Source: Botryllus schlosseri
Taxonomy: Eukaryota
NCBI GenBank assembly: GCA_051294905.1
Contig: CM119372.1
Coordinates: forward strand, 3,782,001 to 3,846,000
Direction: 5' to 3'
DNA length: 64,000 nt
Translations under genes and position numbers: made by a program
In this document: one piece after another, positions 24,083 through 33,356 of the stretch
Layout of the letters: each line of letters starts with the position of its first letter
Numbering within the stretch: position 1 is the stretch's first letter
Notes under the pieces: generated by a model
The model's input: only the letters and a program-made list of their open reading frames with translations
The model's database searches: none
What the model was told of the DNA's origin: nothing

Positions 24083-27000
24083 AGTACATGATAGATCAGC
24101 GCGCACTGAACTTCGGAAACGGAATTACTACCATTATCTTTAAGTAGCAAGCCTGAAACTTGGAGCAGTGTTAAATACTACCTTCACGACATATCATACC
24201 AAGTTTCAAGAATTATCATGGTGCGAAACACCGTCAAAATCGACCTATACCAGCAAAGGTCGACTCAACGCATATTACGGTAACCGAGTTCAGATATAGA
24301 TACGATTGTTACATCACACCTTAAGGGCGAGTAGGCATATTTGCCCCGGTTGCTCGGCCATTTTACGAATAGGAGAGAGTAAATCACCGTTTCTTTATTG
24401 TGCGCGGCTTTGAGAGAATAGATAGTGAAAGCTTGTTATGAGCGCTACCGGGGCAAGCCCCGGCTAGGCATTCACAAAGCGAAAACACAGAAGAGAATTC
24501 GATTTTCGCAGACTTCGCTATGTATGGGCGTTTGCAAGCGAAAGCACAAGAAGAACGCGGGTTTCGCTGTGATCTCGGTATATATTGATTGCTGTGCGTC
24601 TATAAATGGTTAAATTGTTATTGAACAGAATTTTAGGTGGGGCAATGCCCCAGTTGCCCTATAGGACGAGCCGCCACTGGAGTAGTCCCACCTTGGCCTT
24701 CGAACACATAAATAAGAGGCATGTGCTCTTACTTACAAGTAAAAGAAGATAACATAAAAAGGATGAAGCGATTAAAAGGAAGTGGCAATTGTCGGTAGGT
24801 GAAAAAGATATGTCTGATCGTGGTTGGGTTGAGCCCGACCAATATATGGCCGATATCTGTCTCCATACAGATTTTGATATAAGCAAACTCCGGTTGATAT
24901 TTATCGGCCTGTTCAATGACGTAATCACTCCTGCCATTGTTTTAAGTGAGAGGGTTTCAGTATTGTTTTTACCATCGGTTCACTTCTTGACGAAAGTATA
25001 CGTCGAAATGTAAGTTGTGTTTCTTAAACTACAATAAACGTCCGCTGAACTGACAGTACTAATTTATTAATACGCAGGAGTTTTATTGTAAATTAGGCTT
25101 ATAAATTCTCTCTCGCGAAGTTAGATATGAAGATTATAATAGGGTGTGTAGAAGCGGATAGTAAATAGGATAATAAAAGTTGAGGACATTTTCAAAGTTG
25201 AGGTCATGAAATTTATGAATGGTTATTATCAACTACTTAAACTACCCATGTATTTGAAAATAATCCGCTCCACATACCTTCAAATGCTCACCAACATCGA
25301 GCAAGATTTCCCTATGTATATAGCTATTGTCCAGAGCTGTGCAACACAACTACGAGTCTTGTGCAAAATTCAATCACGCGATTTGTGTCTGTACTCTGGA
25401 ATAACGTTTACCGTCTAAAGTCCGTAATTTACCTTCTTGTGAGTTTTAAAAGACAATGTTTTGACTCTTTGCTACCTCAACATTGCATTTACAATGGCAT
25501 TATTCTATCCATTCAATTGCTTATTATTTTCAGTGAACTGATTTCCCCTATACATTTGTATTTTTGTTTGTCAATCTAACGTTTTCAGAGCATAACGACT
25601 TCTGATGTTCCTGGCTGGAGTGGCTTAGTGTTTATCACTCTGTTTTAGGGGTGTCGAACATACGGCCCACAAATCAATTCAGAGTAGATTGAAAAATTGC
25701 TTGTATTATGCGGCACATACCTAAAAAGTGTTTTGATATTTAGTAGAAATACTTACAGAATAAATAAGCCCTCCAGACAACAAATGTTGAGCTATGTTGA
25801 TATGCCCGCAATATAACCATCCGACGGCGGTGTGTTGGTTTCACTCTATAGTCACCATTGGCAACCAAGTCGCTGATATTGACACCCAATTCCGGTAAGG
25901 CAAAAAGTGCACATTGATTCCAGAAAGAAGTTCAAAACAGAAGAGAAAGCACTAATGCGAGACCGTCATATTCAAATATCTGTTGTCGCACCGCTGTATT
26001 AGTTTTGGCTTAAAAGGTCTTCGGCCGATACCCGAATCGCGATTTAATACTGATGAACCAAATTCCAACCTCCGCGTTTACAGCTCAATCTCTTGTATTC
26101 CTCACGACACATACCCATAGGGCTAACGCCAGATTACGACTAAAATAAAGTGAGCATATAGAAATATGCCGATATCGAATTTGAGAATGCCAACTTATAT
26201 CGTTACAGATACTGTTTATAGGCTTATATATAACTGCAATTCAATCGGCCACTCAACGTATTTTTCCAATTCCCTTGTTTGATAATAAAGGTGCTATACC
26301 AGAAAAGAACTCCTATGATCCGATGGTAACATAATATAGTATACTATAATGTACACAGGCTTGATAATATTATTCAAGTGAAAAGCAAGGGCATGAGGTA
26401 GCATTTTCGAATCATTGACCGGTCCGGTCCGCGACGCAAGGTGAGTTTGACACCACCCCTGCTGTATTATGTCGAGCCTCCCGTCTCTATTATTATAACT
26501 TTGCTTATCTGCTTATCACATTTCCCCTATTACATTTTTGCTATGTATGTTATCGATTTTCACGGTTGAAAAATATAGATTCTGTCGCTCACTCTCTCTC
26601 TCTTATGCCGGGTATATATTTATCAAATTACCGCCACTATTTAAAAGTTCTAGTTGAAAGTGCTACATTTTGATATCGGAAGAATATATCGAGTTTATCG
26701 ACAATAATACAATGTATCGGCGACACCGTTATCGCGTCAAAATTCTGATATCGGGCGGGAGCTCCAGTTTCTAACTCCGATGGATATGGTCAGTCAAGAA
26801 CAAAAGTCCATTCTGTGCAGTGTCCACTCTTAAACACCCTTAATCTACTATATAAGCTCTTCATTATCACTTAATCAAGCACGATAACTCATCATTCTCA
26901 ATAGTCTGTATTATATTTTAGTAAAATATATTAGAATCTCAGTTCTAGTTGCGATAAATGCGAAGATTCCTAATTTTCTATTGTACAAACACGGATATGC

Positions 27001-27160
27001 GTTTAAAAACGTATATGCATTCCATTTCATGATTGAATACGTTCCTCAGCGAGGTGTTTCCGAAGTCAAGAGACGCCGATAGCAGTAATTCTTCCAACAG
27101 GCTCCGTGGAATTTCAGCTACGCTGGAACTGTACCAACTCCCTCGTTCGTGTTTGGGAAT

Positions 27161-30100
27161 TCATTCCGATTCGTTGTGACGTTTCGTCTCTTCCATGAGC
27201 AAGTCGGTTTTCTTCTCTTTCTGTTTCGTGAATCTCCCGAGCCATGATCGGTCTTCCGGCGCCAAGAATAATCTAAGGACCATTTTCTACTCGGTTATCA
27301 TGGTCACACTTTTCGAAACTAAGAAATGAGTTGAAACCCGACCGTATAGCACAGTGGTTCCTAACCTTTTTCGACTCATCGTCCCCTATCCAGCTTGACT
27401 AATATTTATCGCCCAACATGAGGACATATAAACGGGGAAATTGTGCAAGTTACCATGATCGCAGGTAAAGTGACTTGAAAAAAGTCAACTTGTCGCAGCG
27501 ATCCCCGAAAATCCGGGTATCTGAGGATAATTTGTGGCGAGTTTACCTTTTTTAGTCAACTTTTGCGGCAGTTCCAGAGTAACCCGTTTTTCAAGTGTAT
27601 TATTAACTACATGTGACTGAACGTTCCAATATTTTCGCCCCCTTCGTACGTTTTCGCCCCCAATCCCACCCCTTTTATTCGCGCCCTCTGTTTCTCAAAA
27701 TCGCCCGCGTTGGGCACCACTGGTATAGCATGTCATACACATGTATTCGTGTCAGAAAGGTGCTTTGAAGAGATGATGGAATATCTGTATCAAAGCAAAC
27801 TAGTTTATCCACTGTTCCGTCACATATAGTTTAACAAAACAGCGCATTGTAAACGTTGGAAAGGGATGGTCCTTATTACAAACGTTGAATATAAATGATT
27901 TTCTCTCTTTACGTAATACGAGCATTGTCACTGTCTTTTTTCCGCAATAAAGCATGTACTGATTTTCTTTACCATCTCAGCGTTGTCAAAAGATAACCCA
28001 AGATGCATATAATCAGAGGTGGTCAATAGAGAAGTACTCAAGTAGATTTTCCTGCTTATATTGCTCCCTCAAGTGGTTATGATTTTATACTACTTTTAAT
28101 TCACAATTTTCAGTTTAATATGCAAAGCTAAGCGTAGAATACCTACTTTTTTTATTTAGTTAGAAAACGCTATACTTCTACTTGAGTGCCAACGGCATAA
28201 AATCGTTTGAAAAAGTTGACGAGTGATTCGCGCAATGTAATCTGGTAAAAGTTCAATGCATTTTAACGCGCAGCTAAAGATTAGGAAACCTGAGAAGCTT
28301 TTGAATGGACGGTCAGGATTACGATATCGAACTTACAGCCAGAACACGCCCGCGGCTATTGCTCCTAGTATGTCAGATGTCCATAGCAACCAATGCCGAT
28401 TCCATGCCGGTCCGCCGATCAGCACTGCGGGGCCGAACACCCTTGAAGGACTGAGGCATACGACTCCTGTCCAGCGCCTAGAATGTATGTAGGATGCATG
28501 TATGTATATTACGGGATTATGCGTTTCGTGAATCGCCTGTCACATGTGTAAACTATGCCAATAAAGAGACACTTTTATTTTTCAGCCACCAAGTACGCTC
28601 ACAGCAACAATGATGATACAGACAAAAAAACGAAAACACAGTATTCAGTATAGGATAGGAATAATTCGATACGACCTTAGAGCTCAACTATTGATCACTA
28701 AAGCTGGGCACAATGATTCGAGACGGGTAGTGAGAGATGATATTTCGAGCACCACAATTACTTACTACTCTCTCCTTGCGACAATAGAGGTAATTTATTA
28801 ACGATAATTATAGTTCCGATGCTATTCTCCACTGTGAAAGGCTGTAAACCACGATTGGCCATGCCGGCGGCATATACGAAACATGCTAATACATATGTGA
28901 AGTTGTGGTCAACCAACAGCATTGTCACAAAGTGTTATGAGATATAGGTATGGTGAATAATTACCCAATCTTATTTAATATGTTGCGGAACAGGCATTTT
29001 AGTTATTGGACGCATAAAATGTAGGCCCACATATTTCAACTTTCTGCATCATCCATACTGTCGCGACTAGGGTTGCATTTAAAGCAAATGCTTGTTTAAA
29101 ACAGTTTGCTCAAAACATGTTTTAAACAGTGTTTTAAACAAAGGCCTTTAAAAAAATTTTAAGTTGTAAATCGTGCCATAATTGTATAAATACTTTGCAA
29201 AAAACATGTTGTGTGAGCCTACGGACAATTACCACGCGATATAGCTGACGTATACGATATGGATGGTTGGAACCCGCAAAATAGTCGGTTCAACAGCTAT
29301 AGTTCGTAGATATTTCGTCAAAGGAGCTATATTTACCCTGTATTTTCAATTGTCAATGTCACTTGACGTCACAATTGAATATTTGTGACGTTATGGCTAA
29401 AAAAAGTAAACAAAAAACAATAAAAAACATGTTTTAAACAAGGGTCTTGTCTTAAACATGTTTGTTTTGAACTGATTTTGTTTTCAATGCAACCCTAGTT
29501 GCGACGTCATAATGATACTCTCTAATACTGCACTCGACGCCGAATACTCGATTCAGAATCGAATCACTCAGTCTGATTTTTTCCCGCCCTACCGATCATA
29601 CCCGTATCAAAAATATTAAACATACGTAAGTTATAGCAGTCATATAAAATTCGAATCAAAATCAGTGTAAGAATGACGTACCCTGATAGAAGACACATGA
29701 ACACAGCCATACCGACGCCGAACACTCCAAGTGGCTCATTTACTTTCGCGTTTTGAGTCAACTCCGCCGCTATAATCGTAATGCTGGCGACCATGATGAT
29801 TTCATTGAAAAGAATTGACAAGGATCCCACATCTTCCGGGATAATAAGTGCAGGTGGCGGCGCTCCCCTTATCAACTAAACTCGTCAATCAAAGAATGAA
29901 TGTCAGGTATAGTTTGTGTGAAGGTCAGGCATAGTTTACTTGAGATACGTAAGCAGCCAGTAGCGATGATAAACATTGCATGATGATGTTTGGTACTAAC
30001 ATAAGAGCAGGTACGGTACCGACGATCACGAGCGTTGTGGTAATAGCAGGACTGAATTGCGCCGGTGCGTAGCTGTTTGCAAGCAAAGCTACTGAAGACA

Positions 30101-31169
30101 GTTCAACGAAACCAATTGGATTTAATACCTCATTCTTGAATACACCATTATGCATATCCACACTGATATTCCTGACTGAAAAGCCGGCGCGAAATACTTT
30201 GACATGTAATCTATCTCCATGTCCCCAGGCTTCGTGGTGCTGCAACAATATATGTTATTCATAGAACTGAATAGATAACGTGGTGTCCTGGTACCAGATA
30301 CATTCGGTTTGTGGATAGGACATGCTATAAGATTGACACCCAGACTTGTCACTATTAAGACCCAGGAAAGATGGGTCCCTAGGGGCTGTCATAGTCCGGA
30401 TTTTCCGGACATGTCCGTACTTTCAGTGTGTAAACAGCGTCCGGGGAATGCTAAATATGCCTAAATGTCCAAAATTTTGGAAAATTGTATTTTAGTCCGA
30501 ATTTTTCTAGGTTGTCAGCTGTCATTTTCCTCAACTTTTTCTAGGTAGCGAGCATTTTCAGTTTGTCAAATCTGTTTGCTTCAAACCATTCTGCAGCTCG
30601 TATATATCACGTGTCAGAAATTGTTTGCTATCAGCAGTGCAGAGCAGGGTTAGGCTTACAACATGGATCTCTTCGTCAACCTTCAAAGCCCGCATTTGAA
30701 TATTTGCTACCCTGGCATCAGTTCATTTAATTTTTAATTATTCTATCAAAATTACACAAGATCGTGATATAATGAATGCTACAACCACCACGGGCTATCT
30801 AGTGCCCGTGGACACCGCGTTGGCGACCCCTGGTGTACAGACATTTACCATTTTCATGCTTATTTGAATGAACTGTGATTTCTTACTAATTCGGAATTTA
30901 ATTCAACTTCCAATCCATTTCAGTAATCCAATTTCGAAATCATAAAAACTTTTCTACACGGTCATTGTCCAACTCTCATAGCATAATTGATGGTAATTGT
31001 TTAACGTTTATACTTACTTCAGATTAAAATCGTCATATTGTGGCTTCTCCACCATGACTCCCCAGAATGTCATCGTAAACTGGGATATGAATTCAACCAA
31101 GAGAGGAATAACAACGTGCCTAACCGGATCGCGCTTGAAGTCATCCCATCCGTATGCAACTGGCGGCAT
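27161..31169 (-). CDS. aqp8-like: Aquaporin-8-like channel (280 aa) with SPA/SPS replacing both NPA motifs
   Basis: Exons 31169-31018, 30239-30129, 30072-29940, 29875-29682, 28477-28337 and 27272-27161; all GT-AG, phases compatible, 843 nt. MIP hallmarks: IPLLVEF (TM1 Glu), AQFSPAIT..MQCLSSLLAA, FNEII (TM4 Glu), CLSPSRVFGPAV, HWLLW..ILGA. Confidence 0.87.
27352..27722. mobile_element. hAT-type MITE in aquaporin intron 5
   Basis: TIR CAGTGGTTCCTAAC / GTTGGGCACCACTG; perfect TSD GTATAGCA (27344-27351, 27723-27730). Confidence 0.8.
29068..29497. mobile_element. hAT-type MITE in aquaporin intron 4
   Basis: TIR TAGGGTTGCATT / AATGCAACCCTA; TSD GTCGCGAC/GTTGCGAC (7/8). Confidence 0.75.
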
Positions 31170-31442
31170 CGTTGTTCCCTTATGTTATGTTGGGTGTCGT
31201 AGCCTAGTCTAATTCCTGGTTTTCCTGAAAATGCTACCGGAAAACTGTATAATGTCACACGAGCCAAACTTGCTGTAGGCCTACAAACACTTGCCAGTAT
31301 CACGCGAATGAGAATGAGCTCTAATTTGACACGAACTGAACTTGATTCGATTTCCAAATTTTTGCGAATCCAGTAATTCTAATTCCAATCAAGTTTGAAA
31401 AAAGACTTCAAGTCAATTTATGGCTACAATTTTCAATATTCC

Positions 31443-31668
31443 AATACACCACAACACTGCGATACAATGAAAGACAGGAAGGTGTCGAAACGACTTGGAG
31501 TAGTCTTTGAAATCAGACCCCCACCTGGCCTAGGCGATGTAAACAAAGGAGGCATGCACGCTGAATGGAAAGTAAAAGAAGATAATATGAAAGGACGGGT
31601 GAAAAAAGGTGGCATGTAACGGAAGGCGAAATCGATATGTCAGATCGTGGTCCGGTAAACTAGAGGAC
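31443..31668. repeat. Interspersed repeat family X (~230 bp, unclassified)
   Basis: Colinear copies at 55046-55260, 54240-54340 (partial), 17800-17860 (inverted, partial), and 18548-18602 plus 24688-24830 (split by the hAT insertion). Confidence 0.6.
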
Positions 31669-32081
31669 TAAATAGTATTTACTCGGTAGAAATCGTTTGT
31701 ACTTCGACTTGAATGTGAACATGCTCGATGACTGTCTGATAGCCGGCAAGATACTGTTCCACAAATCAGGCCCGGCATATGCGATAGAGCGATGATCTTT
31801 TTTGTCTACCATATAGTATAGTTGGACGACGTGGACGCACGTGTGTTGTACTGATACATAAACTTGGGAATTTCTAGTTTCCGCATATTATTTATGTTTA
31901 GGACGCCGGATCTTTTGAGCAGTGATTTGTTAGACACACATCCTGGTTCCTTTGGGCCCTGGCTATGATACGGTGGACCTGATGTTGTAGTTTTTGCAGT
32001 GGCTTCGGTGCGCTAACACTGGCATCCCCCCAACAGATGATGCCATATTTGACGATGCCAGGTGATGCCATACTTTAAAGC

Positions 32082-33356
32082 CAGGACGTAACTGCCAAAC
32101 CCCAAACCACCCAATGGGGGGGGGGGGAGAGTTCGAAGGGGGCCGCAAATTATTTCGTGAATTAGCATAAATTATAGAGTATTTTTTGAAATTTATCCAA
32201 CTTTTTCAAAAAATTTTCGCGCTAGGCGCGATTTAAAGTTGCCAAATATCTTGGTTATTTGGTACTCTTCCCCCAAGAAAAATGATTTATAGAAATGGAT
32301 ATATCGGCGCTGGCCGTTACCGCGCCACTACGCACCAAGATATATAACGATTTAGGACATATTACATGCGACTCCAAGAAGTGTGCCAGAACGATCGGCA
32401 GCGCGAAAAGCTTGGCCGAAAAGGACTGCATGCCCTTACGCAGACCGAAAACTTCGTTATGTATACAAAATAATAGGTTTAATTGTCCAGGCGCCTAAAT
32501 GACTGGCGCCATATGTTCCTGTCTTGGCAATCTGAACCTCCGAAGACAAATACCATCTCGCAGGAAAAAAGTTTATGCCAGTGAACAATACCACTTTGAA
32601 ATCGATTCTATATTTTTGATGTAGCAGACAGGAGGTCACGAAATAAAATCACGTAACGAAGTCATACCAACGGGTCCGCCCGCCCGAAGATGTTTAATTA
32701 TTATTTACGGTCCTTACAGTTTCCGGTAAATCTGATAACGTGAGCAGAGAGGACAAGAAATTGATAGCAATATATATGCAATTCCCGATCTTATTGACCG
32801 ATTGTATCATGAATTATCGAATATTTTCGCCCTTAGCGCAGGCTCACTAAACAGCAGTGCAGCTAATTTCGCGGCAAAAGCGAACACTGTGATGAGGGGG
32901 TCGGTTTATAACCCTATGAGATCCTCAAGGCAAAGTTTTTGTGGGGGCGGGGCTGACGAAGTGCTGTTTCGTTCCTGCCAACGGGTATACGCCCGAAGAT
33001 GTTTAATTATTATTGGGCGGTCCTACGTTTTCAAACACACCCCGTTCAGCTCTACCGGTAAATTTGATTACGTGAGCCGAGAGAGGATCAAAATTGATAG
33101 CAATATATATGTAATTCCCGATCATATTGACCGATTCAACCATGATTTACCGAATTTTTCGCGCTTCGCGAGTCTAGGCGGGAAAAGCTGACTCACCAAA
33201 CGGACACCAAATGCAGATGTCAAATAGCGGCAAAAAGCGGGTAGCCGAAGGGGGTCTGGGGGGCGAAGCCTCCCATAAGCTCGGTTTATCACCCTATGGG
33301 GGGGGGGGGTAAGGCCAACGTTTTTTGGGGGCTGACGAAGTGCTGTTACGGCCCTG
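32082..33356. mobile_element. Non-autonomous hAT element, 1275 bp (family shared with 56304-57633)
   Basis: Termini CAGGACGTAAC / GTTACGGCCCTG; perfect TSD TTTAAAGC (32074-32081, 33357-33364); internal ~330-bp duplication. Confidence 0.85.

Follow-up and report, generated by a model that had tools for sequence, protein, structure and literature searches.

Can an aquaporin dispense with both of the asparagines by which its superfamily is recognized? This question is raised by a single gene in a 64,000-nucleotide stretch of the genome of the ascidian Botryllus schlosseri (contig CM119372.1, positions 3,782,001 to 3,846,000; "the window" below, with positions counted from its first letter). The gene encodes a major intrinsic protein (MIP) of the aquaporin-8 (AQP8) type on the minus strand between 27161 and 31169, and its six exons are joined by splicing into an open frame of 280 amino acids, in which the first Asn-Pro-Ala (NPA) motif reads SPA and the second SPS. 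According to three papers, the NPA triplets cap two half-helices and place their asparagine side chains in the channel centre, and these asparagines, called crucial, act with the helix dipoles and the aromatic/arginine (ar/R) region to exclude cations (PMC4150397, PMC4734766, PMC3245135, citing Wree et al. 2011). A first-pass annotation, made from the sequence alone, had regarded loss of the asparagines as rare, and the literature bears this out: of the 1008 MIPs in MIPModDB, fewer than 16 have lost an Asn to another residue (PMC3245135), while vertebrate AQP8-type channels keep both, with a His-Ile/Val-Ala/Gly-Arg filter and variation only at the third motif position (PMC13163493). We report here that the Botryllus gene is transcribed, correctly spliced and under purifying selection. 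Its product is a real and unusual AQP8-type member, less singular than it appeared at first since only one of its two serines is special to it, and what makes it interesting is chiefly the natural series of motifs to which it belongs.

Two serines in a transcribed and spliced gene

The two replaced motifs lie on separate exons. SPA (residues 95-97) is encoded as AGT CCT GCT at 30045..30053, in the context QFSPAIT (CAA TTC AGT CCT GCT ATT ACC), within exon 3 (29940..30072), which carries loop B with half-helix B and transmembrane helix 3 (TM3). SPS (residues 206-208) is encoded as AGT CCT TCA at 28444..28452, in the context CLSPSRVFGP (TGC CTC AGT CCT TCA AGG GTG TTC GGC CCC), within exon 5 (28337..28477), which carries loop E with half-helix E and TM6. 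Proline is kept in both motifs, alanine in the first only. Comparison of the spliced 280-residue product with a profile of 105 non-tunicate MIPs gave a match of 105.6 bits (E 1.4e-34) over residues 18-266, in which S95 and S206 align to the two NPA asparagines. The first-pass annotation had placed these serines at 30053-30045 and 28452-28444, both with AGT codons, and the observation is confirmed exactly as placed; the loss of both asparagines is borne out by the sequence, by RNA and by the profile alignment.

RNA evidence placed on 27000-31600 came from three contig sets (X1, X2 and X15) and one raw RNA-seq run (X23), representing four studies. Twenty runs of one species contain part of the locus; in the best of them roughly one sampled word in four is present, close to the share that the exons make up. 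All five splice junctions were found as RNA joints (27272/28337, 28477/29682, 29875/29940, 30072/30129 and 30239/31018), reading CT..AC on the plus strand and therefore GT..AG on the gene strand, as had been asked of the six-exon model. The joint between exons 4 and 5, read as 28476(+1)/29681(+1), recurs in all four runs, and that between exons 5 and 6 appears as 27272/28337 in X15 and X23 and as 27272/28339, with two allelic letters, in X1 and X2. One X1 contig covers exons 1-4 and another exons 5-6. Exon 3 contigs from X1 and X2 show no difference from the window, exon 5 contigs differ at 28438 and 28338 only, both synonymously, and no alternative letter was found at either Ser codon in any run at a 10% threshold. 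Since independent RNA repeats both the motif codons and the junctions, assembly error, a mis-joined exon and editing at the Ser codons are excluded within these data. Transcripts with NPA at these positions, which would have spoken for an assembly error, were looked for, and those found carry the Ser codons.

The remainder of the gene follows from the same joints. All five introns have GT...AG ends, and the start codon at 31169 is the first ATG downstream of an in-frame stop, preceded by a 5' untranslated region (UTR) of at least 31170..31246, the latter position being reached from exon 1 by an X1 contig. The coding part of exon 1 (31018..31169), placed by the 30239/31018 joint in X1, its GT donor and tblastn of relatives, encodes the N-terminus, TM1 with E26 and the start of loop A; exon 2 (30129..30239), bounded by joints on both sides and supported by alignment, encodes the rest of loop A, with an N51-T-T sequon, and TM2; exon 4 (29682..29875) encodes loop C, TM4 with E157, loop D and TM5; and the coding part of exon 6 (27161..27272) encodes the C-terminal tail and ends in a stop at 27163-27161. 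The 3' UTR (27000..27160) continues below 27000, for in X1, X2 and X15 there are contigs over 27000-27272 that overrun that end. An intact frame over six exons had been predicted from the sequence, and splicing, intron ends and RNA joints all uphold it. No second MIP gene was found in the 64-kb window by tblastn.

Considerable allelic variation accompanies this model. Over its 229 bases, the X1 contig spanning exon 1 and the 5' UTR (31018-31246) shows 19 differing positions and three small indels relative to the window; the eight differences within the coding sequence comprise six synonymous and two conservative changes, and indels between alleles in the contigs are confined to the 5' UTR. This contig is a very divergent allele, as fits the high heterozygosity for which ascidians are known. 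Separately, a 1-base deletion was seen at 27217 (codon 263, in the C-terminal tail) within an A-rich run, in four of 13 raw X23 reads that begin at two positions. The contigs of the three other runs do not have it, and it represents either a slip of sequencing or an infrequent frameshift allele that would alter the final 18 residues.

Apart from its motifs, the pore keeps the marks of a MIP. Besides the significant profile match, the protein has the glutamates of TM1 (E26) and TM4 (E157) and the Arg following the second motif (R209, 28443-28441), as the first-pass annotation had stated, and what it lacks are the two NPA boxes of the superfamily. The ar/R filter consists of S73 in TM2 (position H2, 30175-30173, exon 2), L194 in TM5 (H5, 29692-29690, exon 4), V203 (LE1, 28461-28459, exon 5) and R209, without His. 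This S/L/V/R assignment, also proposed earlier, is agreed upon by three alignments, one made with MAFFT and two with HMMER, the first of these pairing an orthologue with AQP4 and the second pairing the window protein with the profile of non-tunicate MIPs. The AQP8 combination of His - Ile/Val - Ala/Gly - Arg with both asparagines is accordingly not that of the window protein. A one-residue insertion that had been reported in loop E does not hold up as a peculiarity, being present only relative to AQP4-type or generic MIPs, whereas the spacing before the motif is identical in vertebrate AQP8. The real length differences are a subfamily-specific insertion of two residues just before half-helix B and another of two residues after half-helix E, the latter common to several tunicate relatives, including the Ciona protein.

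The ages of the two serines in tunicates

To place the protein, its exon 5 alone (50 aa) served as the query of an exhaustive search of representatives, which matched 31 proteins, including P0001 (281 aa, UniRef UPI00193A92E9), a Styela clava protein carrying the NCBI name "aquaporin-8-like" that became the entry point to the family. Single exons match the Pfam MIP model (PF00230) with 16.1 and 22.9 bits, the latter for exon 5, below the cut-off of 25, and give weak or no matches in the PDB; the orthologues reach 58-78 bits against the same cut-off. When P0001 and the subfamily alignment were used in word-indexed searches, four to five subfamily members were returned, among them the transcript-derived P0032, P0033 and P0034 from Logan assemblies; the window protein itself is absent from the collection searched. 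Identity to the window protein is 67.5% for P0032, 66.5% for P0034, 58.8% for Styela P0001 and 55.6% for P0033. P0034 as called (251 aa) starts at an internal ATG: 38 in-frame codons upstream of it (L003:164-277, also in L004 and L005) encode TM1, and the real open reading frame is L003:164-1033, of 289 aa. P0032 and P0034 may be orthologues of two species or paralogues of one.

A profile search of the wider family returned, in order, a tunicate group, vertebrate AQP8 (E 1e-27 to 1e-25), and then fungal, bacterial and TIP-type MIPs. The tunicate group includes a Clavelina lepadiformis protein named "Aquaporin" (P0043), a Ciona intestinalis protein named "aquaporin-like" (XP_004226091, P0006) and the marine sequences P0042, P0015 and P0044-P0050. 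Maximum-likelihood analysis gave a tree, limited in that it has no rows of AQP1/4, AQP3 or AQP11/12, on which the tunicate proteins form one clade with support of 100/99 that adjoins vertebrate AQP8, and within it the window protein, P0001, P0032, P0033 and P0034 form a five-member subfamily with support of 100/100 on a long stem. Vertebrate AQP8 proteins are the nearest named non-tunicate relatives among the matches listed. AQP8-type identity, claimed from the sequence at the outset, is thus borne out by the profile search and the tree, as well as by the Swiss-Prot fold search described below and the NCBI name of the Styela orthologue, with few other classes sampled. Membership of the AQP11/12 type finds no such support: the motif pattern differs, and no protein with either name is among the best 120 profile matches listed, many of which are nameless; this judgement is one of names and motifs, the tree holding no AQP11/12 sequence.

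Placement within a tunicate AQP8-like clade is indicated by monophyly with Ciona, Clavelina and Styela, by a small residue at H2 and by shared introns. The Clavelina gene likewise comprises six coding exons; of its introns, four lie at the alignment positions of those in the window gene and the fifth in the variable loop A. On the Clavelina sequence (L006:1-22052, CAUIVY010000129.1), a claudin-family gene lies upstream on the opposite strand, with an NDK/Dpy-30 gene further up, and no second MIP gene was found within 10 kb.

The motifs of this clade, given as loop B/loop E, are graded. Ciona P0006 has NPA/NPA and P0050 NPA/NVS; Clavelina P0043, P0042 and P0047 have NPA/SPS, as do P0015, P0044, P0045 and P0048, in which Asn follows in place of Arg, and P0049, in which Phe does. 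Within the subfamily, Styela P0001 has NPA/NPT, P0032 and P0034 have NPA/STS, P0033 has NPS/SPS, and the window protein has SPA/SPS. Of the 15 clade members examined, 12 have Ser as the first loop-E residue, and all 15 have Ala, Ser or Thr at H2, where AQP8 has His. On the tree, the first loop-E residue requires two changes, one gain of Ser and one return to Asn in Styela, and the first loop-B residue a single change, on the window's own branch. Considering this distribution together with the changes on the tree, the loop-E Ser is ancestral and widespread, and only the loop-B Ser is new. The codons agree in kind: the loop-E Ser of the orthologues is AGT or AGC, and their loop-B Asn is AAC in all three with a known coding sequence, against AGT in the window. 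At H2, every one of the other four subfamily members has Thr, making T73S likewise private to the window protein. Whether the SPA/SPS pair is conserved in related tunicates had been posed as a check. Its SPS half proves to be common in the clade while its SPA half is private to the window, so that SPS and the His-less filter, which had seemed peculiar to this gene, are the common state of the tunicate clade, and what is exceptional is N95S with T73S. The five proteins that have lost Arg besides Asn (SPS-N in P0015, P0044, P0045 and P0048, SPS-F in P0049), which come from marine metagenomes or metatranscriptomes and from Logan assemblies, have an even more unorthodox pore.

Two further stretches are common to all five subfamily members. 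An N-x-S/T sequon lies in loop A (N51-T-T in the window protein), and the cytoplasmic tail at residues 247-272 (exon 6, 27263-27185) keeps LAPxDRSWLGRF, a basic stretch and D-[LIV]-L-M-[ED]-E. These are possible sorting (tail) and glycosylation (sequon) signals, and the sequon suggests passage through the secretory pathway.

Constraint, fold and the probable state of the pore

Are the serines those of a maintained protein? Among the variants listed there are 14 coding polymorphisms, of which 11 are synonymous and three are conservative replacements (V20I, V40A and I60M), corresponding to a pN/pS of about 0.08 (194 synonymous and 646 non-synonymous sites) for these variants, beyond which 15 more exist, with calls mostly from assembled contigs. 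Comparison of the gene with the orthologous transcripts L001, L002 and L003 gave pairwise non-synonymous distances (dN) of 0.22-0.37 and synonymous distances (dS) that are saturated (>2) or not computable (NG86, YN00); the resulting omega of about 0.1 or less is rough because of this saturation, pairwise, and not specific to the branch of N95S. The argument for constraint accordingly relies on polymorphism. At the 129 columns that are invariant in four subfamily relatives, the window protein differs at 14, mostly conservatively; counted likewise, the Styela protein and P0033 have 13 and 18 such differences, respectively. The possibility that the gene is unexpressed and evolving with a dN/dS near 1 was looked for; the gene is expressed and its polymorphism overwhelmingly synonymous.

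The fold was approached through an orthologue. An AlphaFold model of P0033, which is 56% identical to the window protein and carries NPS/SPS, was built from a 28-row alignment (predicted local distance difference test, pLDDT, 83.7; predicted template modelling score, pTM, 0.80) and has six long helices with two short ones at 96-105 and 207-217. The half-helices begin at 96 and 207, immediately after N95 and S206, which thereby occupy the helix-cap position. The best 50 matches of this model in the PDB are all aquaporins, among them the ammonia-permeable AtTIP2;1, and four of its best nine matches to Swiss-Prot models are AQP8 (rat, human, Notomys and mouse). Because the alignment is colinear, the window protein very likely shares this hourglass fold.

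Given these results, we think it probable that the gene specifies a working channel, a divergent AQP8-type MIP that is transcribed, spliced and constrained and whose half-helices are capped by serine, with altered selectivity predicted. The loop-E Ser was inherited from an old tunicate clade in which Ser is the majority state, and N95S in loop B and T73S in the ar/R filter arose in the window lineage. Serine is a good helix N-cap that both donates and accepts hydrogen bonds. Like Asn, it could therefore cap the N-terminus of each half-helix and bond to the permeating molecule, so that the architecture can stand, as is suggested by the model of P0033 with its SPS, and the pore has probably stayed open. 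At its centre, the constriction would be slightly enlarged and would donate hydrogen bonds less strongly, and the outer S/L/V/R filter, without the His of AQP8, would be amphipathic. Such a pore is predicted to pass water, small neutral solutes (H2O2, ammonia or urea-like) or both, with altered selectivity. It may also hold back inorganic cations less well, since their exclusion reportedly requires the asparagines of NPA. The deep conservation of the loop-E Ser, the conserved half-helix flanks and purifying selection together argue for a working state rather than decay. We put forward only tentatively, and with considerable doubt, the fuller proposition that this is an animal aquaporin selectively maintained and working without any NPA asparagine, at the tip of a tunicate clade that exchanged its loop-E Asn for Ser before the aplousobranch/stolidobranch split.

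Several points weigh against a working channel. The limits attached above to pN/pS and omega apply here, and the structural model is that of an orthologue. The terminal branch of the window protein is the longest of its trio (0.39 versus 0.23 and 0.12). Furthermore, the five close relatives differ from one another in the motif residues and yet agree throughout in the flanks, which could mean that the pore centre is no longer a functional site, and arthropod Aqp12-like proteins with CPY/NPV gave no swelling of oocytes (PMC4539701).

The last two points also speak for a different account, in which the aquaporin fold is kept around a non-conducting monomer pore, the protein joining heterotetramers with a canonical paralogue as its regulatory or trafficking partner, or acting in adhesion or as a scaffold, with selection on fold and surfaces rather than on the pore. 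The first-pass annotation had likewise allowed either altered selectivity or a non-channel role, and both stay at the level of inference. In support of a silent pore, the motif positions vary freely, the ar/R Arg has been lost in some clade members (the SPSN and SPSF proteins listed above), the arthropod precedent concerns unorthodox aquaporins with one Asn lost, and the tail motif D-[LIV]-L-M-[ED]-E, shared by all five relatives, might be a sorting signal. However, conservation within the subfamily is highest in the half-helix regions and pore-facing segments, with APAQF-x-P, RVFGPAV and AWNRHW invariant; the window protein itself keeps the Arg and both glutamates; Ser is a competent cap and hydrogen-bonder; and no partner paralogue is known, the window and the 10-kb surroundings of the Clavelina gene having yielded none. 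We therefore judge this account unlikely.

Recent release from constraint after loss of the second Asn, leaving a transcribed gene on its way to becoming a pseudogene, is more improbable still. It could draw on the long terminal branch, on the two private changes at pore positions (N95S and T73S) and on the deletion at 27217, but neither the frame nor any splice site is broken, listed polymorphisms run to 11 synonymous against three conservative, allelic indels are restricted to the UTR, and private changes at conserved columns are about as many as in the Styela orthologue (14 versus 13), while the deletion stems from two read starts in an A-rich run and is missing from the contigs of the three other runs. 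That the Ser codons or the gene model are an artefact of assembly error, a mis-joined exon or a collapsed paralogue is scarcely credible, as no support for it was found beyond the strong allelic or copy variation seen in exon 1 of X1, whose coding differences (six synonymous, two conservative) are those expected of an allele, whereas RNA assemblies and raw reads of four studies repeat the junctions and motif letters and the 280-residue product is colinear with four orthologues.

Repeats also occupy the locus. In intron 4, a 446-bp element at 29060-29505 resembles a miniature inverted-repeat transposable element, with 29-nt terminal inverted repeats that are 90% complementary and an A/T-rich interior, and occurs as a single copy in the window. 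Its RNA contig depth is in the thousands, against tens on the exons, and many of these contigs continue into unlike sequence, a combination that marks it as a high-copy, transcribed dispersed repeat. Two more segments, 27308-27461 in intron 5 and 31466-31600 upstream of the gene, reach summed contig depths of up to about 4,300 and about 8,500 over all runs and are presumably other dispersed repeats. Scans of 26500-32500 against Rfam (gathering score) and for direct repeats gave no match.

A natural motif series and its known counterparts

The NPA asparagines are the signature of their superfamily, held to cap the half-helices, to orient water on its way through the pore and to contribute to keeping cations out, and here an expressed, constrained chordate gene has neither. 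One of the two was given up long ago across a tunicate AQP8-type branch with selective constraint kept, and the comparative series within that branch may reveal which functions of the motif are dispensable. Were the Ser-capped pore to conduct inorganic ions, or solutes that AQP8 excludes, the succession of NPA/NPA in Ciona, NPA/NPT in Styela, NPA/SPS in Clavelina and SPA/SPS in the window would test the role of the asparagines in excluding cations and protons. Tunicate AQP8-like channels constitute an unstudied unorthodox group: no description of double-Asn loss in an animal, of a tunicate SPS class or of an SPA/SPS aquaporin was found in the searchable literature. The earlier caution that the motif might belong to a widespread, described class is hence half justified, its SPS part being common in a tunicate clade yet without a published description in that literature. 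"AQP8" has been listed among water-channel genes that change during tail regression in Styela (PMC11988888); this may be a paralogue other than P0001, as the primer encodes F-G-P-A-V-V and not F-G-P-A-V-L.

The closest counterparts are the four subfamily relatives (Styela P0001, P0032, P0033 and P0034), 56-68% identical over the full length, which have in common with the window protein the insertion before half-helix B, the sequon of loop A, a Thr or Ser at H2, the tail LAPxDRSWLGRF...D[LIV]LM[ED]E and, preceding the first motif, a Gln where His is usual. They differ in keeping the loop-B Asn, with NPT, STS, SPS and STS, respectively, in loop E, so that the window protein alone has Ser in both motifs as well as Ser at H2. 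Other tunicate AQP8-like proteins likewise have a small H2 instead of His, and many have GG-x-AWNRHW after half-helix E, but they are 30-40% identical, lack the loop-B insertion, always have NPA in loop B and in some cases have no Arg. Vertebrate AQP8 has the same loop-E spacing and a Cys two residues before the motif; its identity to the window protein is approximately 25-30%, its filter is H-I/V-A/G-R rather than S-L-V-R, and both of its asparagines stand where the window protein has SPA/SPS.

Natural loss of Asn is also found in bacteria, although in prokaryotic proteins on unrelated branches of the superfamily. The Burkholderia SPA protein of Wree et al. 2011 is said to be a functional channel. 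A C-terminal SPA occurs in glycerol facilitators of Burkholderia, Janthinobacterium and Chromobacterium, and an aquaporin of Segniliparus rotundus, known from sequence only, has lost both asparagines (TPV/VPA) (PMC6912568). Among eukaryotes, the unorthodox AQP11/12, Aqp12-like, SIP and XIP families share with the window protein the possession of deviant motifs, and some XIPs are without the first Asn. Aqp12-like proteins without it have been described as well (PMC4539701, PMC6262540). In contrast to the tunicate protein, these unorthodox families keep the Asn of the second motif; in the window lineage the order is reversed, the second Asn having been lost long ago and the first only recently.

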